Of a DNA stretch of 64,000 bases, positions 22,108 through 53,384 are shown piece after piece (the stretch's first letter is position 1; every line of letters begins with the position of its first letter). The notes beneath the pieces were generated by a model. It did no database searches and had not been told where the DNA came from. It saw only the letters and a program-made list of their open reading frames with translations. This DNA comes from Octopus sinensis. Lineage: Eukaryota. The position numbers were made by a program, and so were the translations under genes. The DNA lies in contig NC_043010.1 of the NCBI RefSeq assembly GCF_006345805.1, forward strand, positions 67,766,001 through 67,830,000, in the 5' to 3' direction.

Positions 22108-22542
22108 TTAGCCGAGAAGCATCTGAATGTCTTCATCCCCGTTGCCGGCCGGAGAGTCTGCAGCGATCCGAGTATATGCTAACGTTACTGGCTGCTTCCT
22201 TCGTGTGAGGCGGTAGCGAACGGCAACGAGCACAACTCCACCGATTATGCAGAAGAAAATGACAAAGACTAAGACCAGGCAGGTGACGAGGAGCCAGTTC
22301 TTTTGCCCTTTGGTGTGCGTACCTGACGGCTGTACACCTGGTCTGATTAGCTGTTGCACTGTGGTTGTTGCTTTCGGAGAAGCAGTGTCGCTGTTTCCAT
22401 GATCGGAGCCGGAGTCCTGTGATGGTGGTATGGAGGACAATTCCCCATTATTGTTGTTGGAGTTGTTGGTGAACCAGGTAGGGACGAAACACAGATCAAA
22501 AGGACAGCAACAAATTTCACTGGTTGCAGGTGGGTTTGTAAT
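22108..22542 (-). CDS. Exon 5 (terminal) of three-finger membrane protein: end of domain 2, stalk, TM, cytoplasmic tail
   Basis: Acceptor tctccttttttaatctag, phase 0. ITNPPATSEICCCPFDLCFVPTWF...KNWLLVTCLVLVFVIFFCIIGGVVLVAVRYRLTRRKQPVTLAYTRIAADSPAGNGDEDIQMLLG*. The five exons sum to 1092 nt (363 aa + stop). Confidence 0.93.
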   Translation of the reverse strand: MTNPPATSEICCCPFDLCFVPTWFTNNSNNNNGELSSIPPSQDSGSDHGNSDTASPKATTTVQQLIRPGVQPSGTHTKGQKNWLLVTCLVLVFVIFFCIIGGVVLVAVRYRLTRRKQPVTLAYTRIAADSPAGNGDEDIQMLLG

Positions 22543-22819
22543 CTAGATTAAAAAAGGAGAGGAAAAAAAAAAATGAGATCAGTTAAACGATAAAATCTTG
22601 ACCATATAGAGATAAGTTCAGATCATACTGCACTCATTATGAAAGAAAGTAGCACTCAATACATTTGGTTGGTGTTACATGTATTTTTTATAACAGTTTT
22701 GACTTGGCTTCACATGAAAACTAAAAATTTTGTGGATAGATAGGATATGTTCACCTCATCAAATGCAGAGACAGAGCAAAGGTTTTGTAAGAAATCTAAT
22801 TGTCATCTGCTGTAGACCC

Positions 22820-23105
22820 TTACTTGTACTTATGACGGCGGTCACCCAGGGCAGGTTGAGCCAGCTTCTTCTCTGGTCCTGAGGGCATCACAAACCATGG
22901 CGACCCACGCTCAACGGTCCTGTGCGAGGTCACTGGAGATAGCGAGCCATTCGCGATTCCATCTGCGCAGACCGACCACCTGCGGACCTGAGAGTTCGGA
23001 GAGGTCCTCCTTTATCGTCGTTGCCCAGGTCTTCAGCTGCCCGCCCTTGCGTTCACGCCAGCTGGCACGTAGAGGTGGAAGGAGGACATCGTGAATCAGC
23101 TCACC
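22820..23105 (-). mobile_element. RTE-clade LINE 3' end in intron 4
   Basis: SWRERKGGQLKTWATTIKEDLSELSGPQVVGLRRWNREWLAISSDLAQDR*AWVAMV..AGSTCPG*, then a (caagta)-like tail. Confidence 0.85.
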
Positions 23106-23474
23106 ACCTGTAAAACAAGCTCAACCAAAACCTTTGAGCGAATTTAGATGGAAACTGAAAGAAGCCCATCATATGTGTATGAGGGTGTCAAGTATGTATA
23201 CGGAGGCTCGTGGCTTAGTGAGTTCGATACCCAATGTGTTGTGTCCTTGAGCAAGACCCTTTATTTCACACTACTCCAGTTCACACAACTGGCAAACTGT
23301 TCAGTGTATTTGTGTTTCGAGGGGCAAGCCTTGTCGTATATTGACTTTATATCACTTTTTTCTTAAGAAATTTACATGAAAAAACTAAATCTCAATTTCA
23401 GTCAATTTATCCAACTTTACATCGATCTTAGCAAAAATAAGACAATTAAGCAACACCTAGAAATCAATACTTAT

Positions 23475-24350
23475 TTCTTTACTGCCCACAAGGGGCTACA
23501 CACAGAGGGGACAGACAAACGGATTAAGTCGATTATATCGACCCCAGTGCATAACTGGTACTTAATTAATCGAACCCGAAAGGATAAAAGGCAAAGGCGA
23601 CCTCAGCGGAATTTGAACTCAGAACATAGCAGCAGACGAAATACCTATTTCTTTACTACCCACAAGGGGCTAAACACAGAAGGGACAAACGGATTAAGTC
23701 GATTATATCGACCCCAGTACATAACTGGTACTTATTTAATCGAGCCCGAAAGAATGAAAGGCAAAGTTGAACTTGGAACATAGCGACAGACGAAATACCT
23801 ATTTCTTTACTACCCACAAGGGGCTAAACACAGAAGGGACAAACAAGGAAAGACAAACGGATTAAGTCGATTATATCGACCCCAGTGCATAACTGGTACT
23901 TAATTAATCGAACCCGAAAGGATAAAAGGCAAAGGCGACCTCAGCGGAATTTGAACTCAGAACGTAGCAGCAGACGAAATACCTATTTCTTTACTACCCA
24001 CAAGGGGCTAAACACAGAAGGGACAAACGGATTAAGTCGATTATATCGACCCCAGTACATAACTGGTACTTATTTAATCGAGCCCGAAAGAATGAAAGGC
24101 AAAGTTGAACTCGGAACATAGCGACAGACGAAATACCTATTTCTTTACTACCCACAAGGGGCTAAACACAGAAGGGACAAACAAGGAAAGACAAACGTAT
24201 TAAGTCGATTATATCAACCCCAGTGCATCCGAAAGGATGAAAGGCAAAGTCGACCTTGGTGGAATTTGAACTCAGAATGTAACGGCAGACGAAATACCGC
24301 TGAGCATTTCGCCCGGCGTGCTAACGTCTCTGCCAGCTCGTCGCCTAACT
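23475..24350 (-). repeat. Multimer of family B SINEs including a ~339-bp direct duplication
   Basis: ggattaagtcgattatatcgaccccagtgcataac at 23521 and 23860; alternating unit variants. Confidence 0.85.
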
Positions 24351-24451
24351 ATAAATCAATACTGAAGTGGAAAAAATCAAATAAATTATGTGCGAAAATA
24401 CAGATAAACTATTTATTAAAACAGATATAAGGTAATAAATTTTTACAAACG

Positions 24452-24848
24452 ACTAGCAGTATCGCCCGGCGTTGCTCGGGTTTGTAAGGGAAATAACTAT
24501 ATAAGCATTTCTAGAGATGTAAAGTATAATAGCCATCTCAATATGGCTAACCACAAAGGGGGGTGGTGTTACTGTAGCTTTTTACGTTCTGAGATTTAAT
24601 AATAAAGTTTTAGAGAGTTACTTCCCTTATATATGACAAAAATGCATTAAAAATGGGAAAAATTGATAGCAAATTTTTTTTTAAATCGTAGACTCATCGT
24701 AGACGCGTGCTTATACCCAGAAGGGCTTGATATGAATCACAACTATAAGATACCCGGTTTTGGTTAAACTGCACCGCAAAATGTGGGAGTAGTTAGGAAT
24801 CTAAATCGTAGGAGACAGACACACAACTTGACTTTTATTTATAAAGAT
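24452..24848 (+). mobile_element. Non-autonomous Helitron/Helentron-like element
   Basis: Starts actagcagtatcgcccggcgttgctcggg (short hairpin) and ends ..gacagacacacaac..ttttatttataaagat, followed by T. No TSD seen. Confidence 0.6.
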
Positions 24849-25228
24849 TTTTCGTGTTAGGTTTTATCTTTTTTCTTTCTCTTCTTAATTCGCATGTCTT
24901 AGAACTCATTACAGCCTTAAGATGAAGTTTGCCAGTATTGCGTTGTGAGTTATCTCCCTTTACGCCAAGGATAACTCCATGATTTTCAATTCGCTACCAA
25001 CCAAAGAAACAGGGAGGAAGGAGGTAAGGAGGACAAATTAACTGAAAGTGATGCTCCAGAATGACCACAGACTAATGGCTGAAACCAGTGACAGGAACTA
25101 TGTTCTTTAACTTTGGCATACCTATCCAATTGTGCGCATCCCGACTCCTGTCTGTTTCTTTATCATTTTCAGAAAAATGGGTATTTCAGTAAATGAAATT
25201 TTCTACAAATACCTGAAAGAAGCCCGTC

Positions 25229-25381
25229 GCTGTGTGGTAAGTAGCTTGTTTACCAACCACATGGTTCCGGGTTCAGTCCCACTGCGTGGCACCTTGGGCA
25301 AGTGTCTTCTGCTATAGCCCCGAGCCGACCAAAGCCTTGTGAGTGGATTTGGTAGACAGAAACTGAAAGAAGCCTGTCGTA

Positions 25382-25424
<43 letters not shown>

Positions 25425-25625
25425 TTGTGTGTCTGTGTTTGTCCCCCTAGCATTGCTTGACAACCGATGCTGGTGTGTTTACGTCCCTGACACTTAGCGG
25501 TTCGGCAAAACAGACCGATAGAACAAGTACTGGGCTTACAAAGAATAAGTCCCGGGGTCGATTTGCTCGACTAAAGGCGGTGCTCCAGCATGGCCGCAGT
25601 CAAATGACTGAAACAAGTAAAAGAG
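25229..25625 (+). mobile_element. SINE family A, near full length
   Basis: tgtggtaagtagcttg..ggttcagtccc..ccttgggcaagtg..(TA)n..cagcatggccgcagtcaaatgactgaaacaagtaaaagag. Confidence 0.9.
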
Positions 25626-26119
25626 AGAGAGTAAGAGTATATGTATGTGTGTCTTTGTGCCTGTGTTTGTCCCTCGACCATCACTTGACAACCGATGTTG
25701 ATGCATTTATGTCCCTAGCAGTTCAGCAAAAGAGACCAATAGAATAAGTATTAGGTTTACAAAGCGTAAGTCCCGGGGTTGATTTCTTCAGCTAAAAACC
25801 CTTTAAGGCAGTGCTCCAGCATGGCCACAGTCAAATGACCGAAACATATAAATGAATAAACTATGTTATACGAGCACTGTATTTCAACTCTACCTTTCAT
25901 ACCATCTGTATGTTGTTGTTTACATTTTGGTCAAGAGGATTGCCATACAAGATGTAATACTTGTATTTCTGATCAGGATGTTTTATGTAACTGCAACTGA
26001 GCACCAAGATGTCATGCGACACTGCTATGATTTTGTTGTCATCCATCTGTTGCCAAAAAACTGACAGATGAATGAAAGTTTAATATTTCTCTCATTTTTC
26101 TAGGATGTTTCATTTAGAT

Positions 26120-26369
26120 CAGAGATTCTCAACCATTTTTTACTTTTCATCTCTTTTGATTCTTCTATTTACTCAGATCTGCCCTCCTAGCCATTCGATG
26201 TCTAAAAAATTATATATTTATAATAAAATATAAGGAATTGTATGTTAAAAAATTGCTAAAATATTTTGTGTATTTTAGAAGTATAACCAATTTATAGCAC
26301 ATAAATTTTAACAAGAAAATCTTACGTGGAACCCTAAGGGTCCTAAAGGACTCCAGATGGGAACCACTG
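26120..26369. mobile_element. hAT-type MITE with 8-bp TSD
   Basis: Ends cagagattctcaacc / gggaaccactg; perfect TSD atttagat at 26112-26119 and 26370-26377. Confidence 0.85.
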
Positions 26370-26397
26370 ATTTAGATAATAAAAAAATATTTCTTAA

Positions 26398-26618
26398 CCC
26401 TTTCGATACCAACCCGGCTGAAACCAGCTCTGGCTCTGAGAACAAATGTCTTGTTTTTATAAGTTTTTAATTAAAATTTTCCACCAAACCTTAGTCACAA
26501 GTTATGTTCCTAACACTAGCTGAATGATAACTAAGTTATTTTACTAAATTCCTTGTTATATTTAAAATTAATTGAAAGAAACACAGAGCATCTCAAAATA
26601 AATACAGTAACGAAAGGG
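26398..26618. mobile_element. TTAA-flanked piggyBac-type MITE (a partial second copy at 26650-26770)
   Basis: TTAA|ccctttcga..tac ... gtaacgaaaggg|TTAA. Confidence 0.8.
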
Positions 26619-26899
26619 TTAAAATATATAATAGAGAAACAATTTTTAACCCTTTTGATACCCACCCAGGTGAAACTGCCTCTGGTTCTGTAGTACAAAT
26701 GTCTCAAAAATCTTCCACCAAACCTTAGTCACAATTTATGTTCCTAACACTAGCTTAATGATAACTAAGATCATCATCAAACATCCATTGTCCATACTAG
26801 CATGGGCTGCACAGTTTGTCTTGGCTGGCTTGTGACAAGTGGCCGTGACCTTTGGCAATATACTATGCTTGAGATGACCTGTCAGGCCAAGTGAAATTG

Positions 26900-27415
26900 T
26901 CGTGGCTGATGCTGGTGTTACAGAACTGGCACCCATGTCAGTGATACATAAAAACCACCCATTACACTCTTGCAGCAGTTAGCATCAGGAAGGGCATCCA
27001 GTCGTAGAAACCATGCCAAATCAGATTGGACACTGGTGATTTTAGCACAGCTGTCTGGACGTTGAGCCTATTTTGGTGACTGTGGATTTGGTGCTGGTGA
27101 CAAATTTACACGCTTGTACATGATGCTTGCATATGTAGAAATAGATACGGGCTTGAGAAGACCTGTCAAGCCAAGTGAGATCATAGTTTTGGGGAGTGCT
27201 GGTGTTTCGTAACTGGCACCCATGCTGGTGGCATGTAGAAAGCACCCACTACATGCTTGGAGTGGTTGGCATTAGGAAGGTCATCCAGCTGTAGAAACCA
27301 TGCCGAATTTGATCAGAACCTGGTGTGGCTCCCCCAGCTTACCAGCTTTAAGTCAAACTGTCCAACCCATGCCAGCATGGAAAATGGACGTTAAATGATG
27401 ATGCTGATGATGATG
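26900..27415 (+). mobile_element. Two diverged family C SINE-like copies
   Basis: ggaagggcatccag..gtagaaaccatgcc twice; (gat)n tail at 27398-27415. Confidence 0.7.
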
Positions 27416-27498
27416 TTACCGTGCTTTGAAATATTAAGAGGTTGTGGGTTAGAAAACAAAAACAAAAAAGTTACTGTTAGTTTGGTGTGGTTACCTAC

Positions 27499-27662
27499 AT
27501 TGGCACAGGAAATATGAGTAGTAGTCAAGTTCAAATTATCGCAGAGATCTACAGGTTGGCAGGAGTAGCGTTCCTGGACAGATAGTGCTCCGCTGATCAA
27601 GGCAACAGTAGTATTTTTCACACACATGCCATCCGTTAGATGGCATTCTTCGTACTGTTGAC
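27499..27662 (-). CDS. Exon 4 of three-finger membrane protein (domain 2)
   Basis: Acceptor tattgtattttcag, donor gtaggt, 164 nt, phase 1 to 0. (G)QQYEECHLTDGMCVKNTTVALISGALSVQERYSCQPVDLCDNLNLTTTHISCAN. Confidence 0.92.
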
Positions 27663-27859
27663 CTGAAAATACAATATAGAGATTTAGAAAATGAAATCAT
27701 CATTGTATGTTACATGAGCAGAAGGAAGTAATAAGAGGGCAAAAGCCAGGGTGTTTCCCAACCTTTTTAACACCAAGACCTATGGATCTTTACCTTTTGA
27801 CCGACAGATTTAAAAAATAATTTTTTGTAACTAAACACTTTCAAAGTTGCTGCCTGACT

Positions 27860-29095
27860 CAGCTCCTACAACACTATGACTGGGTGTTGAAACAGCTGCT
27901 CAACCACTCAAATGTGGAAGTGATATATCTCGACTTTGCAAAGGCCTTTGATAAAGTCGATCATGGAATGATATGTCACAGACTGTGTGTTCCTGGCATG
28001 GGGCCATCTCCAATGACATGCAAATAGTGAGCGGTGTTCTGCAAGGCACTGTTTTGGGACCACTACTGTTCATAATGGCCCTCTCAGACATGCTTTCACC
28101 CACACAGAGAGCCATGTTCACAAGTTATGCAAATGATACAAAAGTTTCACAGGTAATACAGAACCCTGAAGACACTATGCACCTGCAATGTGAGCTGGAC
28201 GAAATATACAAGTGGGCTGAAAAGAATAGCATTCAGTTTAATACTGAAAAGTTTCAAGTCTTATGCTATCAGAATGCAAAAACTAAATGCAATATCAATT
28301 AAATAAACTGGACCTGCAGAGATTGCAATCCCAGAGGCACAGTCAGTGCGAGACCTGGGCATTTACATGAGTAATGCTGCAACCTTTCATGTGCATGTTG
28401 CTAAATTGGCAACGGAATGCAGGTGGTTGACCGGATGGATTCTTAGAACTTTTAGAACAAGAGACCAGGAAACCATGATGGTCGTCTGGAGGACACTTGT
28501 CCTAGGCCACTTTGACTATTGCTCTCAGCTATGGTCACCAACAAGTGTCAAATTAGTCTCAGAACTTGAGGCAATCCAACGAAGCTACACAAAGAAGATA
28601 TCCTCTATGCAGCATATAAGCTACTGGGAAAGACTCAAGAGATTAAGACTATTCCTTAGAGTGTAGGCGAGAAAGATATGCCTTAATATATATCTGGAAG
28701 GACTTGTCCCAAACTTTGGCATCGAGAGTTACACAAATACTAGAACTAGGCACCACTGCATAGTGCCAAGGACTCCAAATTTGCCATCAAGATGTAGGAC
28801 AAGATACTGCAATAGCCTAGGCTTCAGAGGTCCACAGCTCTTTAATATCCTCCTGAAGGACCTGAGAGACCTGCATGGGGTAGATGTAAGTATCTTTAAA
28901 ACAAAGCTGGACCTCTTCCCATCAAGTGTCCCAGATGAACCAACTTCGCGGTAGGAGGTGCAGATGAGGGCAGCTGCATCAAACTCTCTCATGCACCAAA
29001 TGTCAATTCCTAAAAAGCATTCGTGAAGTAAAATTATGTAGCAACACCAAATGGCGGTGCCCCAGCGTGGCCACAGCTTGTGAGCTGAAACTAGA
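27860..29095 (+). mobile_element. CR1-clade LINE, 5'-truncated reverse transcriptase remnant (pseudogenised)
   Basis: VIYLDFAKAFDKVDHG, SGVLQGTVLGPLLF, YANDTKV, RDLGIYM, FDYCSQLWSP, LEAIQRSYTK, GPQLFNIL; several frameshifts and stops. Confidence 0.92.
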
Positions 29096-29284
29096 TAAAA
29101 TAAAATAAAATAAAAATAATATATATATATATATATCATTATATATATTATATATATATATATATAATATATAAAACTTAGATATGTTTCGACCAAAGAT
29201 TGGTCCAGGCCATGTCTAACTTAATAACACCACCTGATAGGATTATCTAAATCCTGTTTAAGTCAAGTTTTGTTTATGGTCCAT

Positions 29285-29590
29285 TCAAGTAGTGAGCTTT
29301 TGTTGGGTGAGTTGTATCCAATTATGGGTGGCTTATCTGGTATTTTTTGAAAGAATCTATCCAGACTCCGTTGGGATCCTTTTCCTCTTTGATCTCCCTC
29401 GGGACAATGTTAAATAGGGCAGGGCCTGTTGATGAAAAGAAATTATGTTGCAGTGTACATGTATGCTGTGATCTTGAATTGGGCAGGGGACGTATGGCCC
29501 GTGGTCCCAGTCTTGGATGAACCTTGAAGCTAATGTTCAGGTCGTTTGGGCAAAGTTGGCGGTATATTCTCCACATCGTACAAATGATGT
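29285..29590 (-). mobile_element. Second CR1-clade LINE 3' fragment, inverted relative to the first
   Basis: HPRLGPRAIRPLP..HNFFSSTGPALFNIVPREIKEEKDP. Confidence 0.75.
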
Positions 29591-29768
29591 ACCATTATAT
29601 AATATATATATATATATATCACCCTGTACAAGTAAACAACATCATCAACAGGGCAGTGATGATGGGGCTGATGAGGATGATACAAACTACTGCCTCTGTA
29701 AATATACATCAGTCAACAATTGGTGCACATCACAGGAAACAATACTGAGGAAACCCAGCTGTACGTAC

Positions 29769-29904
29769 CTACAACAGTACCATTGAGCCTGGAGGCCTGG
29801 TAACATGTGGCAGTTATTGGTGGTTCTGGACCGGCTAGAGTATGGTTATTGCACTTGTTTCCCTCACAACAGATTAGCTGACCAGTAAGACCTTGATAAG
29901 ATGT
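29769..29904 (-). CDS. Exon 3 of three-finger membrane protein (end of domain 1, start of domain 2)
   Basis: Acceptor ctattttctttgcag, donor gtacgt, 136 nt, phase 0 to 1. TSYQGLTGQLICCEGNKCNNHTLAGPEPPITATCYQASRLNGTVV(G); contains the canonical CCx4CN end motif. Confidence 0.92.
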
Positions 29905-30037
29905 CTGCAAAGAAAATAGAATTATAAGCAGTTACATCAAAATTGCGAATGTGATTTTTCAAGCCTGTTTTTTTTATCGTAATAAACTTAACTGATACAA
30001 AAAAGATAAAGTTTGAACTTAGATTTTTAAAAAAAGT

Positions 30038-30495
30038 AGACGTAGGAGTGGCTGTGTGGTAAGTACCTTGCTTACGAACCACATGGTTCCAAGTTCAGTC
30101 CCAGTGCGTGGCACCTTGGGCAAGTGTCTTCTACTATAGCTTCGGGCTGACCAAAGCCTTGTGAGTGGATTTGGTAGACGGAAACTGAAAGAAGCCCATC
30201 GTGGTGCTATTAAGTTAGACATGGCCTGGGCCAATAATGGCCGAAACCTATCAAAGTATCAAAGTATCAAAGTATATATGTATATGTATATATATGTATG
30301 TGTGTGTGTGTATATGTTTGTGTGTCAGTGTTTGTTCCCCCCAACATCACTTGACAACTAATGCTGGTGTATTTACGTCCCCATCACCGATAGAATAAGT
30401 ACTAGGCTTACAAAGAATAAGTCCTAGGGTCGATTTGCTTGACTAAATGCGGTGCTCCAGCATGGCCACAATCAAATGACTGAAACAAGTAAAAA
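30038..30495 (+). mobile_element. SINE family A with a short foreign insert at about 30200-30275
   Basis: Family A head and tail; internal gtggtgctattaagttagacatggcc..gccgaaac segment. Confidence 0.85.
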
Positions 30496-30967
30496 CATAT
30501 AATAATGAGGTTTTATCACCCTCATCTTTTAATGTCCATCTTCTATGCTGATATGGGTCAAAGAATTTGACAGGATCTGATAGGACCAAGGACTTCATCA
30601 TACTCTAGTGTCTGTTTTGGTAGGGTTTCTACAGCAAGATGTCCTACCTAATGCCAACTACTTTACAGGGTGCAGTGAGTGCTTTATTTCATGTTGCTCC
30701 AGTCCACAATATTGTTTGAAAAAAACGTTATATGATATAATGTAAGAGGTAGCCTATCGAAAGAGGAAGAATACTTTTAGTGAATGTTAAATATAAAAGA
30801 AAATTAATGTTTAAATTATATATAATGATAGAGATTACTTATATGAACTAAAGGTGTGTTTTTGCCAATGTTTACATCGGTATGCACGCTCTATAACTGT
30901 TGTTTACTAGGGGATTTTTAGAAAAAATAATGAAAAATAGCTCAGAATTATTGACAAGTTTCATTTT

Positions 30968-31061
30968 TTCACTTCCCTGAAGAGAAGATTGCATTGTTTT
31001 ATACCATTTATTCTTTTGAATAATATCAGTGAAATCTTCGAAACATGTGTCGAAAGTAAAA
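30968..31061 (+). ncRNA. Type I hammerhead ribozyme motif with long stem II
   Basis: ACUUCC-CUGAAGA-GAAGAUU...AAUCUUC-GAAA-CAUGU-GUC|GAAAGU. Core intact (30977-30983, 31040-31043); one mismatch in stem I. Confidence 0.7.
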
Positions 31062-31089
31062 GTATTTGATTTATACCTGCGTTAAACTC

Positions 31090-31665
31090 CCGTTTGCCAG
31101 CTCTGTCTGGCCCCGTGTCGGTGGCACGTAAAAGCACCATCAGTTCGTGTCCGTTGCCAGCCTCGGCTGGCCCCCGTGCCGGTGACACGTAAAAGCACCG
31201 TCCGCTCGTGGCCGTTTGCCAGCTCTGTCTGGCCCCGTGTCGGTGGCACGTAAAAGCACCATCCGTTCGTGTCCGTTGCCAGCCTCGGCTGGCCCCCGTG
31301 CCGGTGACACATAAAAGCACCGTCCGTTCGTGGCCGGTTGCCAGCTCTGTCTGGCCCCGTGTCGGTGGCACGTAAAAGCACCATCCGTTCGTGTCCGTTG
31401 CCAGCATCGCCTGGCCCCGTGCCGGTGACACGTAAAAGCACCATCCGTTCGTGGCCGTTAGCCAGCTCTGTCTGGCACCTGTGCAGGTGGCACGTAAAAA
31501 ACACCTACTACACTCGCGGAGTGGTTGGCGTTAGGAAGGGCATCCAGCCGTAGAAACACTGCCAGATCTGACTGGGCCTGACGAAGCCTTCCAGCTTCAC
31601 AGACCCCAGTTGACCCGTCCAACCCATGCTAGCATGGAAAGCGGACGCTAAACGATGATGATGAT
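31090..31665 (+). repeat. Family C element with an expanded ~60-bp minisatellite (121-bp higher-order repeat)
   Basis: Alternating units gccagctctgtctggccccgtgtcggtggcacg and gccagcctcggctggcccccgtgccggtgacac, followed by the family C body. Confidence 0.9.
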
Positions 31666-31837
31666 GATATTATACAAAATGTTCCACATAAACCCGAAGT
31701 TTCTACCTTTAAAAACAAGGAGTTACAACCTTTTTACTTGTGTGATTTTTTGCTACCCTGGTAACTATTTATATATTTTTTCCGTGTTAATTGTTAACAA
31801 GGGTAAAATATACTCATCTATATATATATATATATAT

Positions 31838-32148
31838 GGCACGTAAAAAGCACCATCCGAATTGTGGCCGAAGCCAGTGCCGCCTCGACTGGCTTCCGTG
31901 CAGGTGGCACGTAAAATGCATCAATCCGACCGTGGCCGATGCCAGCCTCGCCTGGCACCAGTGCAGGTGGCACGTAAAAAGCACCCGCTACACTCACGGA
32001 GTGGTTGGCATTAGGAAGGGCATCCAGCTGTAGAAACATTGTCAGATAAGACCGGAGCCTGGTGCAGCCTTCTGGCTTCCCAGATCCCCGGTCGAACTGT
32101 CCAACCCATGCTAGCATGGAGAACGGACGTTAAACGATGATGATGATA
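31838..32148 (+). mobile_element. SINE-like family C
   Basis: Family motifs and (gat)n tail; very similar to 42868-43190 in inverted orientation. Confidence 0.88.
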
Positions 32149-32249
32149 TATATATAAAATTTAATAAGGGTAGAAATTGATATTAATCAATTAAAACCAG
32201 TGGCCTAGCATATTAAAAAAATCTGAAGATTAAAATATTTTTACATACA

Positions 32250-32411
32250 AAATTTAAAGCACTGACCACTAAAAGTGGACGGTCAACATGCTAGATATAG
32301 ACGTCAGAATTGCTATTTTGTGAAGAACACATTCTTTGTGGAAAATAACGATTTTCACATCTATATCTAGCATGTTGACCGTCCACTTTTAGTGGTCAGT
32401 CCTTTAAATTT
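32250..32411. mobile_element. Fold-back element with ~52-bp inverted arms
   Basis: aaatttaaagcactgaccactaaaagtggacggtcaacatgctagatataga and its reverse complement at 32360-32411. Confidence 0.85.
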
Positions 32412-32414
32412 CCC

Positions 32415-43190: not shown

Positions 43191-43657
43191 CAGGGATCCT
43201 GGCTGGTTCAATTCGATTTCGATTGCCCCAACATGTCTTCGCAAGCATATATATATATATATATACACATATATATATATCTGTCTTTTTTCTAGTCTGC
43301 TTGCTTCTCTCCTTTTCTGGAAGGAATCGACTGTGGCCAGACCTGGAGAGAGATGGACACGATCTAAAAGACGACCAAGACACTCTGTATGTCAGAACAG
43401 TACCTCTACAACTCCATCAACAGCTGAGAGCTCGACGCAAAGCAAGGCAGTAACTATGGTATGAATCAGATTTTGGAAACTCAGAATGCATTTTTTTTTC
43501 CTTCTTTCTTGGCAAAAGCAATATATTCCTTTGCTGCAAGCCAGCACCCTTATTGGCACACTGTTAATAGTAATCAATACAAGTTTCTCAAGTGATAAAC
43601 TGTCAATAATCACTATTTATTATTATTAAGGTAGCAAGCTGGTAGAATCATTAGCAT

Positions 43658-43818
43658 GTGCAGGAGTGTCTGTGTGGTAAGTAACTTGCTTATCAACCAC
43701 ATAGCTCCGGGTTCAGTCCCACTGCGAGGCACCTTAGGCAAGTGTCTTCTACTATAGCCTTGGGCCAAACGAAGCCTTGTGAGTGGATTTGGTAGACGGA
43801 AACTGAAAGAAGTTCGTC

Positions 43819-43868
<50 letters not shown>

Positions 43869-44030
43869 GTTGGTGTAATTACGTCCCTGTAACTTAGCAG
43901 TTTGGCAAAAGAGACCAGTAGTAGAATAAGTACTAGGCCTACAAAGAATAAGTCCTGGGGTTGACTTACTCGACTAAAGGCGGTGCTCCAGCATGGCCAC
44001 AGTCAAATGGCTGAAACAAGTAAAAGAGAG
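43658..44030 (+). mobile_element. SINE family A
   Basis: Family A motifs. Confidence 0.85.
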
Positions 44031-44615
44031 TATGCCTGACAAAATGATTTGCAACATTTCTGTCGTCTTCACATTCTGAGTTCAAATTCAACTGAAGTCC
44101 ACTCAATCTTTCAAAATTTTGGGGTTGATAAAAATAACTACCAGTTGAACACTGGGGTTAATGCTTTCGACTAGGGCCCCAACGACTTCACAATTAAGGC
44201 CATGTGCAGATAGCAGAAAAGGATTATTATTATTATTATTATTATTATTATCCAGCCGTAGAAACACTGCCAGATCAGACTGGGCCTGATGCAGCCTTCT
44301 GGCTTCACAGACCCCAGTTGAACCGTCCAACCCATGCTAGCATGGAAAACGGATGCTAAATGATGATGATGATTAAGGGGGTGAGCTGGCGGGATTGCTA
44401 GCATGCCAGACAAAGCTTAGCAGCATTTCATCTGACTTTGCATTCAGAGTTCAAATTCCACTGAGGTCAACTTTGCCTTTCTTCCTTCTGGGTCAATAGA
44501 ATAAGTACCAGTCGAGCACTTGGAGCAATAATACTGACTAACCTCTTTCCCTAAAATTCAAACTATTATTAAAGGCAGTAAGCAGGCACTATGCTTAGTG
44601 GCATTTCATTCATCT

Positions 44616-45031
44616 CGTTTCAGCGAGCTGGCAGAACCGTTAGCACGGCGGGCGAAATGCGTAGCCGTATTTCGTCTACCATTACGTTCTGAGTTCAAAT
44701 TCCGCCGAGGTCGACTTTGCCTTTCATCCTTTCAGGGTCGATAAATTAAGTACCAGTTACGCACTGGGGTCGATGTAATTTGCTTGGCGTATAGGTTCCA
44801 CACCTGGACGGGATGCCGATCCGTCGCAGGTGAGCTGCAAGATGCACGAGGAAAGAGTGAGAGAAATTTGTGACGAAAGAGTCAGCAGAAGTTGGCCATT
44901 ACCTTCTGCCAGACCTACATGAAGATTAGGTGTTTCGCTCATAAACACACACATCGCCCAGTCTGAGATTCGAACCCAAAATCCCTCGACCGCGAGTCCG
45001 CTGCTCTAACCACTAGGCCATGTGCCTCTAC
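44616..45031. mobile_element. Family B SINE (+) abutting a 3'-truncated family D SINE (-)
   Basis: B head at 44620; D head ends at 45031. Confidence 0.8.
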
Positions 45032-45745
45032 ATCACTGTACAATTCCATTATTATGGATTTGAATTGGGACCTTGAATCATAGTGACTCTTACATTAGGT
45101 GAGTCACAACCATGGACACCACTCCTATGCAGTTTACTCTCTTCATAGAGCTTGGTGATCCTGAACGGTCATCTTCTCGGATTCCTCTGCTCAAGGCCAA
45201 TGTAAGAAGCACCGTTGGTTCAGCTGAGCTCGGCTACTGCCTCTTTACAATCCACCAAAGTCCTATGACTTTGCCGTATCCCAGACAGAGTGGCCAAAGC
45301 AGGGCCGTCGCATGACTTTTAGAGACCCCTTGCAACTTTCTGTTTTGAGGCCCCATCTCGTCAATCAAAATTCATGATCTACGCACCTTTATTAACTGCA
45401 AAAATCAAACAGTCCCTTACAGCTTGCTGTATTTTAGAATCCCCACAGCAGATTCTGCTCTGATGATTCTAAAATACAATACATAAAAAACTAACGGTAT
45501 ATCTTTTTCTACCCCTCTGTACTTAGATACACACATACACACAAACTTGTGTGTGTGTTTTCACATGCACACAAACTTGTGTGTGTGTTTTCACATGCAC
45601 ACACCTTGTTTTTGGCACAGGAAGAATTTTGTCTCCAGTTTTTATTGCCTTAGGAGGTCAAAGGCCACTGTTCTGGGTACAAAGTGACCAGCTTTTCAAC
45701 AATGTCAAATAACGCCATATATATATATATATATATATATATTAT

Positions 45746-46140
45746 GAGTGGCTGTGCGGTAAGTAACTTGCTTACCAACCACATGGTTCAGGGTTCAGTC
45801 CCACTGCATGGCACCTTGGGCAAGTGTCTTCTACTATAGCCTTGGGCCAACCAAAGCCTTGTGAGTGGATTTGGTAGACGGAAACCAAAAGAAGGCTGTC
45901 ATATATATACATATATGTATGTGCATGTATATGTTTATGTGTCTGTGTTTGTCCCCCCAACATCGCTTGACAACCGATGCTGGTGTGTTTACGTCCCCGT
46001 AACTTAGTGGTTCAGCAAGAGAGACCGATAGAATAAGTACTAGGCTTAGAAAGAATAAGTCCTGGAGTCGATTTGCTCAACTAAAGGTGGTGCTCCAGCA
46101 TGACCGCAGTCAAACAAGTAAAAGAGTTAAGAGAGTAAAG
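45746..46140 (+). mobile_element. SINE family A
   Basis: Family A motifs. Confidence 0.85.
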
Positions 46141-46524
46141 AGTAAGGGGAGAGAGCAGCAGATGGTCAGAAATTTTGGTGGAGGGGGTTAAGAATAAGTA
46201 TAACATAGGCGGAAGTGTTGTTTGAGAAATATCAGTGAGGAGAGAGAGGGGGGGATAAGGTGAGAGGGACTGATCAGAAAGTAGGGGTGATGTGTGGGTG
46301 GGTGTGTAGTTATAAATATCTTTTCATGGGAATTTTGTTATTAATTTAGTTTCATTTTCAAATGTGGTGTAAAACGGAAGTGCACAAATAAAAGAAAGAA
46401 AAGAAATTCTTCAAACATCAGAAACGCACACATAAAAAAAACAGATGCAATAAATTTTGGTTGCATTCTGGAAGAGATACCGTTACCCCACGGGGGGAAG
46501 GAAAAAGGTATGGAATTGGAAGTG

Positions 46525-46580
<56 letters not shown>

Positions 46581-47340
46581 AAAACAGAGAAATTTTCTGG
46601 GAGAAAAATATCTTTCAGACTTGTAATTCCGTGGCAGGAAACAGAGAAAAAAAACCCTTTTTTTTTTAATGAAAAAGAAACCCCCCCACCACCACCACCA
46701 ATTCCTTACTCCCTTTCTTAAAAAAAAAAAAAAAAAAATTTTGTTGTGGTAGTTACTCCAAAATTCGAACTCCCCATCTTCTCAAACACACGAACATATT
46801 TTGATTTTTAAAATGTTACTAGCAGCAGATATTTGGAATTGTAGTGGAGGTGGAGGGAGAGGCGGTTCTCCAATATGATTAACGTCATTGGAACTTGGAC
46901 GAAAGAATGTTGCAAAACAAAACATTTAGCAGAATTAGTGACAAATAAAAAATACAACCAACACGAGGTGTAATTAATTCAAAATTTGGACAGCAAAACT
47001 GTAATTAGAATCAAAAGAAAATGACAGTGAGTAAGCCTTGACCCGTGTGGAATAAACAAGATGTTTGTACAAATCTTCAAACCAAGGAAGGAGCTAAGAT
47101 GGAAATAGGGAGAGGAGGGGGATGATATTCAGGGTCACGACGCTCTTCTAGCTTTTAGTTCACGGAGGTGAGACGGCTTATATTAGTATCTTGTCCCACC
47201 TTCCTAACTCCATCCTTGCGGACTTTAACGTATACTGGTCGGTAGTTCTCAATAGCTATTTGATTTGCATTACATCTTAGGACTTTCCTTAGCACAACGG
47301 TAGGCGTAACATTTAGGACGTTATGCAATTCTGTAATATA

Positions 47341-47704
47341 AATTGTGGCACTCGGTCGGTTACGACGGTGAGAGTTCCTGTTGATCCGATCGACAGGAAA
47401 TTAACGTGCAAGTGGCTGAGCACTCCACAGACACGTGTACCCTTAACGTAGTTCTCGGGGAAGATTCAGCGTGACACAGAGTGTGACAAGGCTGGCCCCT
47501 TTGAAATACAGGTACAACAGAAACATGAAGAAAGAGTGAGAGCAAGTTGTGGTGAAAGAGTATAGCAGGGTTCGCCACCACCCCCTGCCGGAGCCTCGTG
47601 GAACTTTGTAGGTGTTTTCGTTCAATAAACACTCACTAGGAATCGAAACTGCGATCCTACGACCGCGAGTCTGTTGCCCTAACCACTGGGCCATTGCGCT
47701 TCCA
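47341..47704 (-). mobile_element. tRNA-derived SINE: family D-related head with an E-type tail
   Basis: Head gtggaagcgcaatggcccagtggttagggc..gtttcgattcc; TSD ctgtaatata (47331-47340, 47705-47714). Confidence 0.85.
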
Positions 47705-50700
47705 CTGTAATATACACAGCAGTAACTGAATCGTGTATATCAACAATAAATACTATTGAATCCTGCGACCCGCGGGATTTTATGAAATGGCATGATTTTT
47801 GGTTGTTTTTAGTAGTGACTCCTGCCTGATAAGCCCTGTCGCATGCAGGCCGCTTCTCGGGAAGGGCTACTCATGTCTGATTTAAATATTTTCAGCTGAC
47901 GTCGGGACATAAACAGCTCAACTTTCGCGCGATGCATCCTGTTTTACTACAAATACCATCTTAAATCGTGTATACACAGGGCAATTTTCTAGGGGGACCC
48001 CACCGTTCTACAGACCCAGAGCTTATCAAGGTATGCCGTGGCTTGCTGTCAATAAATAAAGACTATAGGCCTCGGCTCCTAGAGTCTGCCTTCACCCACT
48101 ATACTAATGATTTCTTTCAATTAAGACGGCCAGTCAAATGAATCGACCCAGTTTACATTTCCGGTGTTTATTTCCAATGTCACAGGTGGGTTGTGAGATA
48201 ATAAACACAGACGATGGAGACGAGATAGTGAACCAGGGACCAAGAAGAACGAAACTAAATACTTCAATAGTACAATTCGATGATACACGGTTTGCTGTCC
48301 GAGAAATCAATCAACAGCTGGTACTTTCCACGTATTATCAATCATGAAATTAATCAAATTTACTCAAGCTATTATATCCTCTCTATGTTTATATTAGCTA
48401 TATTTCATACACACACACAACTCTATTAAACGCACTGAATATATACATTGTTTAATATGAGTTGCTTTTGTTTGTTTAGTTCCAAAACCTAAGGCGGTGA
48501 TGGGCAAAATGCGGCCAGCAGGATTTTCTGAACGGCACGACTAAATTAAATATCTTGATTTTTTGTTTAGTAGTTGTGACCCGTTTTTCGATTAAGGTTA
48601 CTCATACTTGCACTAAAATGTTATTATTTAAAAAAAAAAAAAAGAGAGAGAGATTTGGCTGTTGTTTCTAGTAGGTTAACGACCGCGGTAAGCAAGAGCG
48701 GGCAACGTTACCCACTGGCAAAATCTCGTGAAAGAAAAACAAAACTATTTGATGTTTTTACAACCAAAACAGCAATTTAAGTTGTGTGCCTGTTATTAAA
48801 TCAAAAAGATTTGTAATTTCCTCGATGCATTTGCGCTTGACACTCGCCCCTCTCACTGAAAAAGCCTCCCCGTTTTGGTCCAGAGGCCTCACTCAAGTCA
48901 GCCTTAATTGAGCAAAAAGTCATGGTGATACCTTATTCACCAAGTTTTAACAGCCGAACAAAATCCCCCATGGGGGCAAAAAAAGAAACCTCAATTAAAA
49001 TGCAAAGAGAAAAAAAATGTATAAAATAAAACTTCTTTGTTTAAAGTTTTTCAACAACAAAAACGAAAACCCATTTTTTCGGGTAAAATAATGAAAGTGG
49101 TAAATGCATTCAATAAATGGTACTTCAGCACTTTTTTCATTCTACTAAAAAAATTGAATATTTAATTATCACATAAATCTTTTTCTCCTATTTAAAATCT
49201 TTAATTACTGAGTGTTTTTTTTTAAATCTCATTACAAGATTTCGGTTCTACTTCACATTTTAAAAGTGAAATTTGTTTGTCCCAGTCAGGTGGGTTGTAC
49301 AAAAACTCAGGTAGGATATAACACTGTCTTTATCTAAAGAGCTAAATCAAGTTAACGCGTAAAGGATTGCCTTGCTGGTTTCGATAGTGTATATAATTAC
49401 ACATACCGTCATTTTGTGTGTATTTGTATACACACGCATACCTCAACTTACGTCATTTCGAGTTGTCTTTTTTCGACTTTACATTTTTTTTTTTAAAAGA
49501 AAAACCTCACCTTCATTTGATTTAGTCAACTTTACGTCGGCATATTCAAACACAGGTGAAAAAAAACAAATAATACTGAAGCGGAAAATCACAATAAATG
49601 TGAAAATATGTACAAACAAATTAAAACAGATATGAGCTAATGAAATTTTTAAACTGTCTTTTCGTGTTACGTCGTTTTTTCGAGTTAAGTCGCATGTCTT
49701 GGCACCATTACAAAAGCAAGTTGAAGTATGCCTGCATGTGTACACACACATTATATATATATATATATAGACTATAAAAACACTGGACTACCTGTCGTGC
49801 AATGTCTTACGTAATGTCTTAAACAGTTCTTTCACTATTTAGCAGTTTCCGTCGTTCAATTTCTAAACTCAAATCCGGCCAGGGTTGACAGATCGATATA
49901 CTTTTTAATGTTCCAAGGGAGGGAGCGGGGATGAGATGAGAGGGGGAGAAAATGGATTAAATAAATACCAGGTATCTACTAGGACTAACCCAATATCAAC
50001 GACATCCAAATATACCATATTTAACACAAAATACGAGGCCGTATGCTGTTGTTTTAAAAAAACAAAAAGAAATCTCAATTCAATGCAAAGGACACGAACA
50101 ATATGGAACGTGTGGGGGTGTATAAAATAAAGGATTGTGTGTGTGTGTGTGTAGAAAATGAGAATTTGGATTTAAATTAGATTTAAATTGAGCGAACTAA
50201 TTATCTGTAAGGAAATTAGAATGGATCATATACAGAGCTGTATAACCCCAAGTAAGTCCTGGCTTACCAGACAGAGCTAATAACCACAGGTGTTCCAAAC
50301 ATGGCAATCACATTTGTTTTTCCTTTTCGGGTATAAGCTACCTAGGATTACATTATCCAATGTGTTGTTCTCTTTTTAAAGTAACGTCGGATTTGAATAA
50401 GATTTGGCTGGGGTTTCTTTATTCTATTTTCTTGGTTTTTTTTTAAAGCAAAACCGAGTGACTGACTGCACAGAGGTTTTCTGTCCTTCCCTCATTAACT
50501 CTCCACAGCACCTGAAGTTGTTTATTTCACCGCAAGCCAGCCTCGCTTGAGAAGAGCTATGACGAAAAACGTTCCAACTATGACCATCCCACCTTTTTAT
50601 TTATTTATTTATTTATTTATTTATTTTTTGTTATGAGTATCTAGGACAACTACAGGTAAACTGCGGCTCGTAGGACTTTGTAAATGATACATCTAACAAA

Positions 50701-51364
50701 ATATTTGAATTCTTTAAGCAGTGCGGCCCACCTGACGATGAGCCACGTCTCATGCGGCCCGCTTTTCCAAAAAAGGTTGCCTACTATCAAATGAATCGCT
50801 TCTTTTTAAAAGATAGCTGTATGTAATCTGAGGGATATATTGCTGTTATTTCTAACTCAGAAGCGGTCACATAAAAGCTAATCTTATCGCTATGTAATAG
50901 AGCTGGTGTTTAGCCCAAGGCCTGACTCAGCAGTTCTCTCTTATCGAAAGCATTCTGACCGTGACCACTCCGTCCGTTTTCTCGCAGTGTCCTTTCAGTA
51001 TTTAAGACGGTAAGGTGTCTTTTGAAGGATATTTAGCTGCCTTTTTTTTTCTTTAGCCAGCCAAACGACCATAGAGAGATTCCAAGTTGAACAAAGCATA
51101 ATAAAGATTGTAAATTTTTATATTAAAATAATGGCATTCTTTCGTTTAAACCCGCAGAATGCCAAAATAATCGTGTCCTAGCAGTATCATAACAATTACC
51201 TGGTCGTAATTTCCTTTCACAAAACAAAAGCAAAGATTAAGTTAGCTTTAAGTTGTAATTACATACAGAAATAGATTAAAGTTTGTATATTTATAATATT
51301 TAATACCACAGTCTTGGTTTCAAACACGGCAGGTAAGTACACCGTAACACCAATTGCCATAAAC

Positions 51365-51407
<43 letters not shown>

Positions 51408-52230
51408 GAAAATACAAGGAGCAATTTACTGGGGTAAACAACCCTTTGAAAAAATAAATAAAATATATATGTTGGTAGAAAGCCTGTCATGTTTACAGAA
51501 GGTGTGGGTTCGTGTCCCACGGGTAGCCTTCGATTTTTTTCCCCTATCCAAAGGGTTCTGAAACCCACATTTACACGCTATTATTTATAGCTGTATTTGC
51601 TTCGAGATTCACCGTTTATATATATATTTATATATTAGTAAAATACATAAGGAGGATATGGCAGGAATTTCCCGCCTGCTCTTTTACAGCCAAACATCTC
51701 ATGGAGGTGTGGTCAAGCCATACCAAACAATGACCAGTCTGTTCGTGTGCACGTCTCATGTATTATGTAAGAATAACTGTGCACTTTAGATACAATATGT
51801 ATTCGTTCTGAAGGGTGAAGATAATGATTAAAAGAACAAAACAAGTCTTAACATTTTTTATCCTATGTGTGTGTGTTGGTCACGACTTGTTTACAACCGA
51901 ATACTTGATGAAATCGCATATCCGTCTATGTATAGATATACATGTTATATACACAGGCATAATTTTAGTAATGTGCTAGTGTCATCTCAAAAATAAGTTT
52001 TATGTATGTTATGCAGTTTTATATAAAGCAGTTGAACGTTGGAATTAAAGAGTCTCTCAATACCAAATTAATTTTTACAAGAAAAAGGTTAAGTTTATAT
52101 ATATGTATACATATATAGAGAGAGGTTAAATCTAATTACACACGTTTACTGTTTGACTCGTTAAAAAGATTACTCGATACCATAGTATAAAGATTAACAA
52201 GATTAATGAGAGATTTTATTTTGGTCATAA

Positions 52231-52280
52231 CTTGCCTGAAGAAGCTGTGAGCACTCACAAGCGAAACTCGGAGTAGCAAG
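52231..52280 (+). ncRNA. Compact type I hammerhead ribozyme motif
   Basis: CUUGC-CUGAAGA-A-GCUGUGAG CAC UCACAAGC-GAAA-CUC G GA-GUA|GCAAG. Perfect 5-bp stem I, near-palindromic stem III, one extra A after A9. Confidence 0.75.
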
Positions 52281-52421
52281 AGGCTGACTTGATGAAAATT
52301 ACATACATATATTCAAAATAAGCAACAGAATCAGTCTTATAATGTAAACACTATCAGTAATAGAATACAAACGTAAATGTTATTTAAACGCCAGGATTTT
52401 TAGAATGTGTGTGTGCGCGTG

Positions 52422-52463
<42 letters not shown>

Positions 52464-52759
52464 AGAAAAAAATCTATCAGAAAGGAACTCTATCTCTCTT
52501 AAAAATATATCTTTTGATAAGCATAACAAATGCGCAACCGGTAAAAAGAACTTTCACCTAATTAAATACACTCTCCCTTGCTTAAATTATTTTGTCAGCA
52601 TTTTCTTCATTTCCTTTTTATATATATATATATGTGTGTGTGCGTGTGTATAGGGAGAATTCACAAAGAAAAAGAACAAAAGACGAAGACAGGTGGTGTA
52701 GAAAACAAACAAATGTATTAGTATAACGCTCGGGAATTGAAAAAAGTCTTTAACGTTAT

Positions 52760-52798
<39 letters not shown>

Positions 52799-53265
52799 AA
52801 TATATATATCAAAAAGGTATGTGTTTGTAAATAATGATATAGAAAAAATAAAATAAAGTAACGACATAATTCAGTTGCAAGGACCTACAAGTGAGTTTAA
52901 AATGGGAACTTTCAAAAGTGAAAGTAAGAAGAAACTAGCATTGAAGTAATAATCTTCCATGTTTTTGTGTAAAATAGGATTAGAATAATTTTTAAAACCA
53001 TAAGCCAACCCATATTGTAAACATGAGTAAAGAAAAAAAATACATTTACAACATCACGACGTATTCACGAAAGCTTCCACGAATATAAAAATTAAACTAA
53101 ATGACAGAATAAAATAATAATAATAATATACAGAATGGGAAAGGTGTATGAAAACATGTTGAAGGGACATTGGCAAGAAGTGCGGATACGAGACATGCAC
53201 AGAGAGAGAGAGAAGGTTTCCCATTAATGTGTGTGTCTCTGAGATAAATATAACAACAAACTTAC

Positions 53266-53384
53266 TTGTCTGAAGGGGAAACCTCGCTGCACACGACAAA
53301 GAACAAGAGGAAAGCACCAAGTAGATACCATCGATCCAATGTATACAACAGACTTCGAGATACACGTGAGGCTACTGCAGCCAT
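53266..53384 (-). CDS. Exon 1 of tandem three-finger (Ly6/uPAR-like) type I membrane protein; signal peptide
   Basis: ATG in gcggcaaaATGG context. Encodes MAAVASRVSRSLLYTLDRWYLLGAFLLFFVVCSEVSPSD + AA. Donor gtaagt at 53265-53260, phase 2, matching the phase-2 acceptor of exon 2. Confidence 0.85.

Follow-up and report, generated by a model that had tools for sequence, protein, structure and literature searches.

C4.4A (LYPD3) consists of two tandem three-finger domains with a membrane-proximal Ser/Thr/Pro-rich stalk and a glycosylphosphatidylinositol (GPI) anchor, and the TGF-beta and activin receptors, together with BAMBI, which has no kinase, are single-pass type I proteins with one three-finger ectodomain that carries a CCxxxxCN box. 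A 2026 survey of LU-only proteins describes the combination of LU domains with either a GPI site or a C-terminal transmembrane helix as standard from sponges to bilaterians, with molluscs having on average about 83 three-finger-protein genes per genome (PMC13719153). The ET module, an 8-10-cysteine domain of unknown function, is known from the C. elegans proteins FSTR-1 and FSTR-2 (F57F4.3 and F57F4.4), which contain 21 such modules in about 2000 amino acids and for which N-glycosylation, a place at the cell surface and a C-terminal transmembrane segment are predicted (PMC2660839, PMC3039406). Here we describe a gene on the minus strand of a 64,000-nucleotide stretch of the Octopus sinensis genome (contig NC_043010.1, positions 67,766,001 to 67,830,000; the window, below) whose 363-residue product has features of each of these groups, and which belongs to a family of molluscan orthologues.

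Comparison with the described systems shows both where this protein fits and where it departs from them. Judged by its predicted fold, its closest structural analogue is C4.4A, from which it differs in having a transmembrane helix and a conserved cytosolic tail, and with which it shares 14-17% sequence identity, a relationship undetectable by sequence. It resembles the TGF-beta and activin receptors and BAMBI in its single-pass type I topology, its predicted three-finger ectodomain and the CCxxxxCN box at the end of its first domain, but it has two such domains rather than one and its tail is unrelated to theirs. The ET module is shared with FSTR-1 and FSTR-2, although the octopus family has one clear and one divergent copy, followed by a stalk and a conserved sorting tail that the nematode proteins do not share; because a phmmer search with the octopus protein reached no nematode protein at E≤1e-3, this relationship is at the level of the domain only. 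The main text of the LU survey includes invertebrate proteins with a signal peptide, one to three LU domains and a transmembrane helix, so that a transmembrane anchor is not in itself novel, and that same text mentions neither the ET module, nor octopus, the octopus family or a conserved sorting tail (PMC13719153). The new elements are the definition of the orthologous family, the assignment of a predicted three-finger fold to the ET module, and the extreme conservation of the putative sorting tail.

Five coding exons extending from 53384 to 22108 on the minus strand (Table 1) join in frame, as read across their flanks, to encode 363 amino acids followed by a TAA stop codon. The introns are all canonical GT..AG introns with good polypyrimidine tracts, in phases 2/0/1/0, and the start codon lies in a strong Kozak context (A at -3, G at +4) with an in-frame stop 13 codons upstream. 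A stop-to-stop scan recovers the five open segments, and the four peptide motifs quoted in an earlier interpretation made from the DNA alone (the sequence-only reading) are all placed on the minus strand. One alternative junction was considered and rejected, since use of a GTAACC donor (phase 1) for intron 4 breaks the frame and the adjacent GTAGGT (phase 0) restores the 363-residue product. The translation is 100% identical over its full length, N-terminus included, to the RefSeq entry "uncharacterized protein LOC115219222 [Octopus sinensis]".

Evidence for splicing comes from a cuttlefish orthologue. Two Logan contigs (SRR8281669 and SRR8281693) of 1.3-1.4 kb contain its open reading frame (ORF) without interruption; this ORF shares a 90% cluster with a protein of Acanthosepion pharaonis and is collinear with the octopus protein across all four junction positions. 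Because the octopus gene spans 31 kb, cuttlefish contigs of this length can only represent spliced transcripts. Proteins from gastropods and bivalves match exons 2-5 and no other site in the window in tblastn searches, and mapping of the scallop and Gigantopelta orthologues on their genomic loci yields five coding exons in each, separated by introns that again have phases 2/0/1/0. In octopus, scallop and Gigantopelta, which represent three classes, introns 2, 3 and 4 occupy alignment columns 181, 249/250 and 310, and a phase-2 intron within the signal-peptide region is also present in both scallop and Gigantopelta. The introns were mapped by an exact-block method, in which the Gigantopelta intron 3 junction was fixed by its acceptor together with the protein coordinate, with the donor not directly placed, and in which scallop intron 4 has two block solutions that define one and the same junction (nucleotide 711). 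Since this exon structure is common to three classes, the gene must already have existed in this form before cephalopods, gastropods and bivalves diverged. A tblastn search with family proteins revealed neither a paralogue nor a tandem copy of the gene in the window. The locus is thus a real gene for a type I membrane glycoprotein, single-copy within the window and orthologous across molluscs; the five GT-AG exons with matching phases and the 363-residue product put forward in the sequence-only reading are upheld by the RefSeq identity, the cuttlefish contig and the conserved introns, and the counted features (8 and 10 cysteines, sequons, transmembrane segment and 36-residue tail) agree with its description.

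The extent of the family was examined by phmmer, with the octopus protein as a single query against 1.84 billion representative proteins and a threshold of E≤1e-3. There are 20 matches, of which about 18 are real relatives; a tandem-repeat pseudo-protein (P0019) and a mis-spliced cuttlefish fragment (P0011) were left out, and one further match (P0020) is a C-terminal fragment only. All of the named relatives are molluscan and are annotated as uncharacterised or hypothetical. They include Octopus and Acanthosepion among the Cephalopoda, Gigantopelta, Haliotis, Patella, Pomacea, Lymnaea, Biomphalaria, Candidula and Elysia among the Gastropoda, and Mizuhopecten, Pecten, Ylistrum, Argopecten, Tegillarca and Sinanodonta among the Bivalvia. 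Searches of a word-indexed database with a family profile and with a scallop seed added only Elysia and other scallops, and no relative outside the molluscs. As far as a HMMER search with one query sequence can reach, these results support a family restricted to molluscs, a possibility that the sequence-only reading had raised and that gains weight from an exhaustive search in which every named match is molluscan. As a separate observation, one member (P0014) turns up as 16 sequences in environmental or metagenome assemblies of ENA, JGI and Logan, in many cases as a fragment of 126 residues; its source is probably an abundant marine bivalve that contaminates environmental samples with DNA or RNA.

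The predicted topology is that of a cleavable-type signal peptide, an ectodomain with two cysteine-rich modules, a stalk, one transmembrane helix and a cytosolic tail. The N-terminal hydrophobic h-region covers residues 19-38, and a helix spans residues 3-33 in the AlphaFold2 model described below. The first domain (D1) has 8 cysteines, at positions 52, 68, 76, 103, 109, 131, 132 and 137, and the second (D2) has 10, spanning 153-237. Purely by analogy, the disulphides predicted for D1 would join 52-76, 68-103, 109-131 and 132-137. As had been noted from the sequence alone, both domains begin C-[FY]-x-x, with C-F-V-G in D1 and C-Y-Q-A in D2. All ectodomain cysteines are kept in the three classes Cephalopoda, Gastropoda and Bivalvia. 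The CC, C and N of the box at the end of D1 are invariant, and of the D2 cysteines nine are invariant and one is at least 90% conserved, with the end of D2 lacking a terminal Asn. In most gastropod and bivalve orthologues Cys2 and Cys3 of D1 (octopus 68-76) are set further apart by a variable insert of 30-50 residues, rich in Ser, Thr and sequons and situated after a conserved C-x-T-G; it is absent in octopus and less developed in cuttlefish, so that the first or second finger of D1 is length-variable. The octopus protein has 12 N-x-S/T sequons, and because their number ranges from 3 to 14 across the family, dense glycosylation is not a conserved requirement. The S/T/N/P-rich stalk (about 241-300) is disordered in the model (247-299, with a predicted local distance difference test score, pLDDT, below 50) and is probably glycosylated. 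A transmembrane segment is kept in 16 of the 16 aligned members, followed by a cytosolic tail of 29-44 residues; because this tail is charged and conserved in all 16, the hydrophobic segment is incompatible with a C-terminal GPI signal.

Sequence profiles place D2 more firmly than D1. D2 matches the Pfam ET module (PF01684) with 31 bits in the context of the whole protein and 26.4-26.7 bits in isolation, against a gathering cutoff of 25, and the alignment pairs profile positions 1-77 of 78 with residues 153-239. For the cuttlefish orthologue the score is 26.4 bits, a match to ET at E≤0.01 is seen in 7 of 16 family members, and the 10 cysteines of D2 are inside the 8-10-cysteine definition of the module. 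On these profile matches D2 is a bona fide Pfam ET module. D1 matches ET below threshold (17.5-18.5 bits) and over the C-terminal half of the profile only (positions 33-77); the family profiles of D1 and D2 match one another over the third finger and the CC..C box (hhalign probability 81.7%, E 1.1e-5), and the two domains are therefore related. UPAR_LY6 (PF00021) gives no match to the octopus protein at E≤10, and its matches to isolated domains are weak and below threshold: 2 in the set of 12 D1 sequences, at E 0.032 or worse, and 2 in the set of 16 D2 sequences, at E 0.49 or worse. The only weak Pfam matches of isolated domains that recur in more than one member are ET, UPAR_LY6 and QVR, to which one match to Activin_recp may be added; the others are unrelated, confined to single members and have E values of at least 0.017. 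A match to TMEM154 (13 bits, cutoff 30.3) was rejected as one of transmembrane and low-complexity sequence, and matches to the dopamine and taurine transporters (E about 0.01-0.1), which align the stalk and transmembrane segment only, were set aside as compositional. With UPAR_LY6 below threshold and no GPI signal, the protein is outside the Ly6/uPAR family proper; with sub-threshold matches, two domains and no kinase, it is likewise outside the TGF-beta receptor and BAMBI families.

An AlphaFold2 model of the full-length protein, built on the 16-sequence family alignment, predicts D1 and D2 as all-beta domains with pLDDT of about 85-95 (about 85-92 for D1) and a disordered distal tail; the model helix at the membrane extends over residues 301-335. 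When this model is compared to the PDB with Foldseek, the top match is human C4.4A/LYPD3 (6iom; E 8.8e-6, probability 1.00), over about 210 columns that include both domains, followed by CD177, TEX101 and uPAR. GPIHBP1 and erabutoxin are matched over single domains, with a template-modelling score (TM-score), normalised to the target, of up to 0.72. The global TM-score against C4.4A is 0.18-0.33, with a root-mean-square deviation of about 20 Å, and the inter-domain geometry thus differs or is undefined. D2 modelled alone (pLDDT 87.4, predicted TM-score 0.78) gives Foldseek matches of which the first 47 all belong to the three-finger superfamily, among them GPIHBP1 (TM-score 0.60-0.74), CD177, uPAR, C4.4A, Lynx1, SLURP-2 and ActRII. 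The models thus support membership of both domains in the three-finger superfamily. The double three-finger, LU-like fold suggested by the sequence-only reading agrees with these matches to multi-LU proteins and single three-finger domains; the ET module, which that reading had set against the three-finger fold as an alternative, turns out not to be one, D2 being an ET module above threshold and also a predicted three-finger domain. In a literature search we found no paper that ties the ET module to this fold.

The most telling result concerns the cytosolic tail. Between octopus and cuttlefish, amino acid identity is 45% in the signal peptide, 45% in D1, 53% in D2, 20% in the stalk, 57% in the transmembrane segment and 89% in the tail. 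The last 26 residues of the octopus tail are identical in cuttlefish (26 of 26), even though 19 of the 26 codons differ; the 21 nucleotide differences in this stretch are all synonymous, and silent divergence is near-saturated. By this comparison no other part of the protein is as constrained as the tail, which is under strong purifying selection and can still be recognised as the same in bivalves. The octopus protein and the common part of the cuttlefish protein end in MLLG, beyond which the cuttlefish sequence has 5 extra residues (TRVYR); a 347-residue member of the cuttlefish cluster (P0022) is five residues shorter, and the difference in length could reflect allelic, isoform or assembly variation.

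Two motifs stand out within the tail. Tyr342 is invariant in the 16 aligned members, all of which have the motif [LM]-x-Y-x-x-[ILV], with Arg at Y+2 in 14 of them. The Tyr is 12-19 residues past the first charged residue after the transmembrane segment in every member (the octopus YTRI is 14 from the membrane), and in none is it preceded by Gly. The spacer that follows is net acidic (-2 to -5), and a hydrophobic pair is situated 0-3 residues from the C-terminus in 16 of 16 members. This pair is part of a canonical [DE]xxxL[LI] signal in octopus and cuttlefish (DIQMLL), scallop, Tegillarca, P0014 and Haliotis (DEDVLI). Two other assignments of the C-terminus were rejected: a GGA-type DxxLL signal, since the Asp is at -4 rather than -3 from the first Leu, and a class II PDZ ligand, since several members have Q or H at -2 and since in cephalopods and bivalves one more residue follows LL. 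The YTRI and DIQMLL motifs to which the sequence-only reading drew attention are real and under very strong purifying selection, which supports their function as signals.

The details of these motifs bear on where such a protein might travel. By analogy, the transferrin receptor and TGN38 (SDYQRL, with the core YQRL) also present a YxRPhi motif, in which Phi is a bulky hydrophobic residue, at an endocytic distance from the membrane, and furin combines YxxPhi with an acidic cluster, so that the octopus tail recalls cycling proteins of the furin and TGN38 type. There is no homology to any of these proteins, their ectodomains are unrelated, and the likeness is in short linear motifs only. Both the Tyr and the bulky hydrophobic residue are needed by the mu2 subunit of AP-2, which prefers Arg in the second X position, where mu3A prefers acidic residues; the transferrin receptor signal is YTRF (PMC2133128). 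Endocytic YxxPhi signals are situated 10-40 residues from the membrane, and lysosomal ones at 6-8 residues, with acidic X residues and often a preceding Gly (PMC4584282), the lysosomal distance being given as 6-13 residues in another account (PMC3442409). AP-2 sigma2 is bound by [ED]xxxL[LI] (PMC3655264). Because of the Arg at Y+2, the spacing of the Tyr from the membrane and the lack of a preceding Gly, we favour AP-2 endocytosis and recycling over direct lysosomal residence as the better fit to the tail sequences. Of the endosomal/lysosomal or recycling receptor that the sequence-only reading proposed, the endocytic and recycling part is thereby strengthened and direct residence in the lysosome is disfavoured.

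A scheme for how the protein may work follows from its two ends. We infer that the ectodomain would bind a protein ligand outside the cell, in keeping with the general behaviour of three-finger modules, and that the tail motif [LM]-x-Y-x-R-[ILV] would act as an AP-2 mu2-optimal signal, to which the acidic stretch and the C-terminal [DE]xxxL[LI]-like pair would add sorting at the endosome or trans-Golgi network (TGN). Together these putative signals would drive constitutive clathrin-mediated internalisation and cycling from the endosome or TGN to the surface. The protein would then be an endocytic or recycling receptor, or a co-receptor with trafficking as the control of its abundance at the surface, and would be neither a resident lysosomal protein nor a GPI-anchored modulator. 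We put the chance that it is a constitutively internalised, recycling surface receptor or co-receptor at slightly better than even.

Several observations weigh against this interpretation. The fold assignment depends on predicted structures, the single-domain Foldseek E-values are modest (best about 0.015-0.05), and sequence searches of solved structures with the whole protein and with family, D1 and D2 profiles give no significant match, the matches to PDB sequences being just transmembrane or low-complexity noise and non-significant CCxxxCN-box matches. The literature that we searched does not mention LOC115219222 and contains no characterisation of any family member with respect to localisation, binding or expression; with its named relatives all uncharacterised or hypothetical and no paper on the locus, the lack of a characterised orthologue that the sequence-only reading had assumed is borne out. 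Gastropods other than Haliotis have only looser forms of the C-terminal signal (EDAVVL, DSVQML, ENVHMI, ETAHIL), and short linear motifs are in any case common and context-dependent. The combination of a DxE motif and a C-terminal hydrophobic pair can act as an ER-export (endoplasmic reticulum export) signal, and [LM]xYxx[ILV] also fits a phosphotyrosine motif resembling the immunoreceptor tyrosine-based inhibitory motif (ITIM). Identity at 26 of 26 residues exceeds the need of two short AP motifs, and hints at further or different partners. The tail might thus be a docking module for a conserved and possibly mollusc-specific cytosolic partner, endocytic, with a phospho-regulated acidic cluster and ITIM-like, in a protein that serves this lineage as an endocytic receptor, or as a decoy, for a secreted signalling ligand, for example of the TGF-beta family. 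We regard this as improbable; if true, it would be the first ligand-binding role for an ET module.

The recycling-receptor interpretation and its alternatives are not all mutually exclusive. The first alternative is a kinase-less decoy or pseudoreceptor for TGF-beta, BMP or activin ligands that would resemble BAMBI in concept and whose endocytic tail would clear captured ligand from the surface. D1 does end in the CCxxNxCN box common to activin-receptor ectodomains, the Elysia orthologues carry the UniRef name "Activin types I and II receptor domain-containing protein", and the top Foldseek matches of D2 alone are to the TbRII ectodomain; there is also no match to a kinase Pfam domain in the octopus protein, in which the tail is just 36 residues. 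However, a CCxxxxCN box is a general mark of the three-finger superfamily and so does not point specifically to a decoy, and the Activin_recp (PF01064) matches remain below the threshold of 20.9 bits in every test, at 8.8 bits for the whole protein and 15.0-15.6 bits (E 0.03-0.05) for isolated D1, with 1 of 12 family D1 sequences matching. The octopus protein has no match to the BAMBI or ecTbetaR2 Pfam families, and its full-length fold favours uPAR-type multi-LU proteins, with two domains and not one. On balance we think a decoy of this kind unlikely.

We likewise see little chance that the protein is a resident lysosomal or late-endosomal glycoprotein, similar to LAMP or endolyn, which would be delivered by AP-3 and shielded from hydrolases by its glycans. 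The 12 sequons and the S/T-rich stalk would suit such a role, as would a short tail with YxxPhi and an acidic dileucine, and [DE]xxxL[LI] signals can also bind AP-3 (PMC2173715). But lysosomal signals differ from those of this family in their distance from the membrane, in the residue at Y+2 and in the preceding Gly, and a glycan shield is not readily reconciled with a sequon number that varies as widely as it does among the orthologues.

A third possibility, which we consider quite unlikely, is that the protein is a phosphotyrosine receptor whose ITIM-like [LM]-x-Y-x-x-[ILV] recruits SH2 phosphatases or kinases after ligand binding, with endocytosis secondary. The ITIM consensus is [SIVL]xYxx[IVL], which includes a hydrophobic residue at Y-2, and all 16 members have L or M there, at a position not required for AP-2 binding; conservation of the entire tail beyond the minimal AP motifs could be explained in the same way. 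Against this, Met, which occupies Y-2 in 7 of the 16, is outside the consensus, the near-invariant Arg at Y+2 is a preference of AP-2 mu2 and no feature of an ITIM, and ITIM signalling gives no part to the acidic stretch or to the dileucine-like pair at the end. One function does not exclude the other, as the YRSL motif of L1 illustrates (PMC2173551). Very unlikely, finally, is a membrane-tethered Ly6-type cis modulator of a channel, receptor or junction (in the manner of Lynx, Quiver or the septate-junction Ly6 proteins) with a tail that serves as an ER-export or trafficking code, which would accord with the predicted three-finger fold, the weak QVR and UPAR_LY6 matches of isolated D1 and D2, and the DED/EED motifs with the C-terminal hydrophobic pair, since those matches are all sub-threshold and found in 2 members each, known modulators are single-domain and GPI-anchored (PMC4839075), and the invariant YxR[ILV] is not explained by ER export.

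Table 1. Features of the octopus gene, its product and the surrounding window; positions are those of the 64,000-nucleotide window.
Feature	Position	Strand	Description
Coding exon 1	53266..53384	-	ATG 53384-53382; signal peptide; residues 1-39 plus 2 nt of codon 40; donor GTAAGT
Intron 1	32999..53265	-	20.3 kb, phase 2, repeat-rich
Coding exon 2	32761..32998	-	First two-thirds of domain 1: Cys52, 68, 76, 103, 109
Coding exon 3	29769..29904	-	Third finger of D1 (CCEGNKCN), linker, first strand of D2 (Cys153)
Coding exon 4	27499..27662	-	Middle of D2: Cys171, 178, 199, 205, 217
Coding exon 5	22108..22542	-	End of D2, S/T/N/P-rich stalk, transmembrane segment, cytoplasmic tail, TAA 22110-22108
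Domain 1 (D1)	29848..32964	-	Residues 52-138; predicted divergent three-finger module, split by intron 2, ends CCEGNKCN
Domain 2 (D2)	22483..29805	-	Residues 153-239; ET module, split by introns 3 and 4, ends CCCPFDLC
Transmembrane helix	22219..22296	-	Residues ~302-327; Kyte-Doolittle 19-residue window up to 3.3; model helix 301-335
Cytoplasmic tail	22111..22218	-	R328-G363, 36 residues; YTRI 342-345 (22176-22165), DIQMLL 357-362 (22131-22114)
Repeat examples	1499-2079, 10069-10880, 23467-24340, 33476-33897, 56512-56900, 62363-63046		Interspersed repeats recurring within the window

The remainder of the window is rich in repeats. Interspersed repeats that recur within it account for 41.5% of the 64,000 nucleotides, and families with at least 5 copies account for 26%; none of them overlaps the five exons. 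These repeats give rise on both strands to recurrent pseudo-ORFs of the form "...ALPNANHSVSVVGAFYVP...". Numerous AT-rich microsatellites translate as IYIYIY... (for example at 52590-52808, 43700-43880 and 25300-25480), and repeats of the CT/GA type translate as SLSLSL or RERERE; both are usual in cephalopod genomes rich in repeats. A 144-residue ORF lies about 2 kb upstream of the gene start (55316-55750, plus strand) with an acidic, Ser-rich middle (…DEEWEEDGSDSFYCYEDDGESD…SSDEEDTEN…) and no Pfam match, which could be a transposon remnant or have arisen by chance. The long ORFs of the window, compared with Pfam, reveal no other recognisable gene, and no tRNA was found in the window. At the Gigantopelta locus (1-589, minus strand) the upstream neighbour gene encodes an RNase_T/SAP-domain protein.

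Nothing is overturned by these findings, as three-finger proteins are abundant in molluscs and transmembrane-anchored forms were already recognised. What they add is a mollusc-wide orthologous family of transmembrane proteins with two predicted three-finger domains, present in at least 12 genera of Cephalopoda, Gastropoda and Bivalvia and not described before. The ET module gains a structural meaning through its predicted three-finger fold, and the extreme conservation of the tail leads to a sharp and testable hypothesis of motif-dependent endocytosis, which may also offer a handle for finding the ligand.

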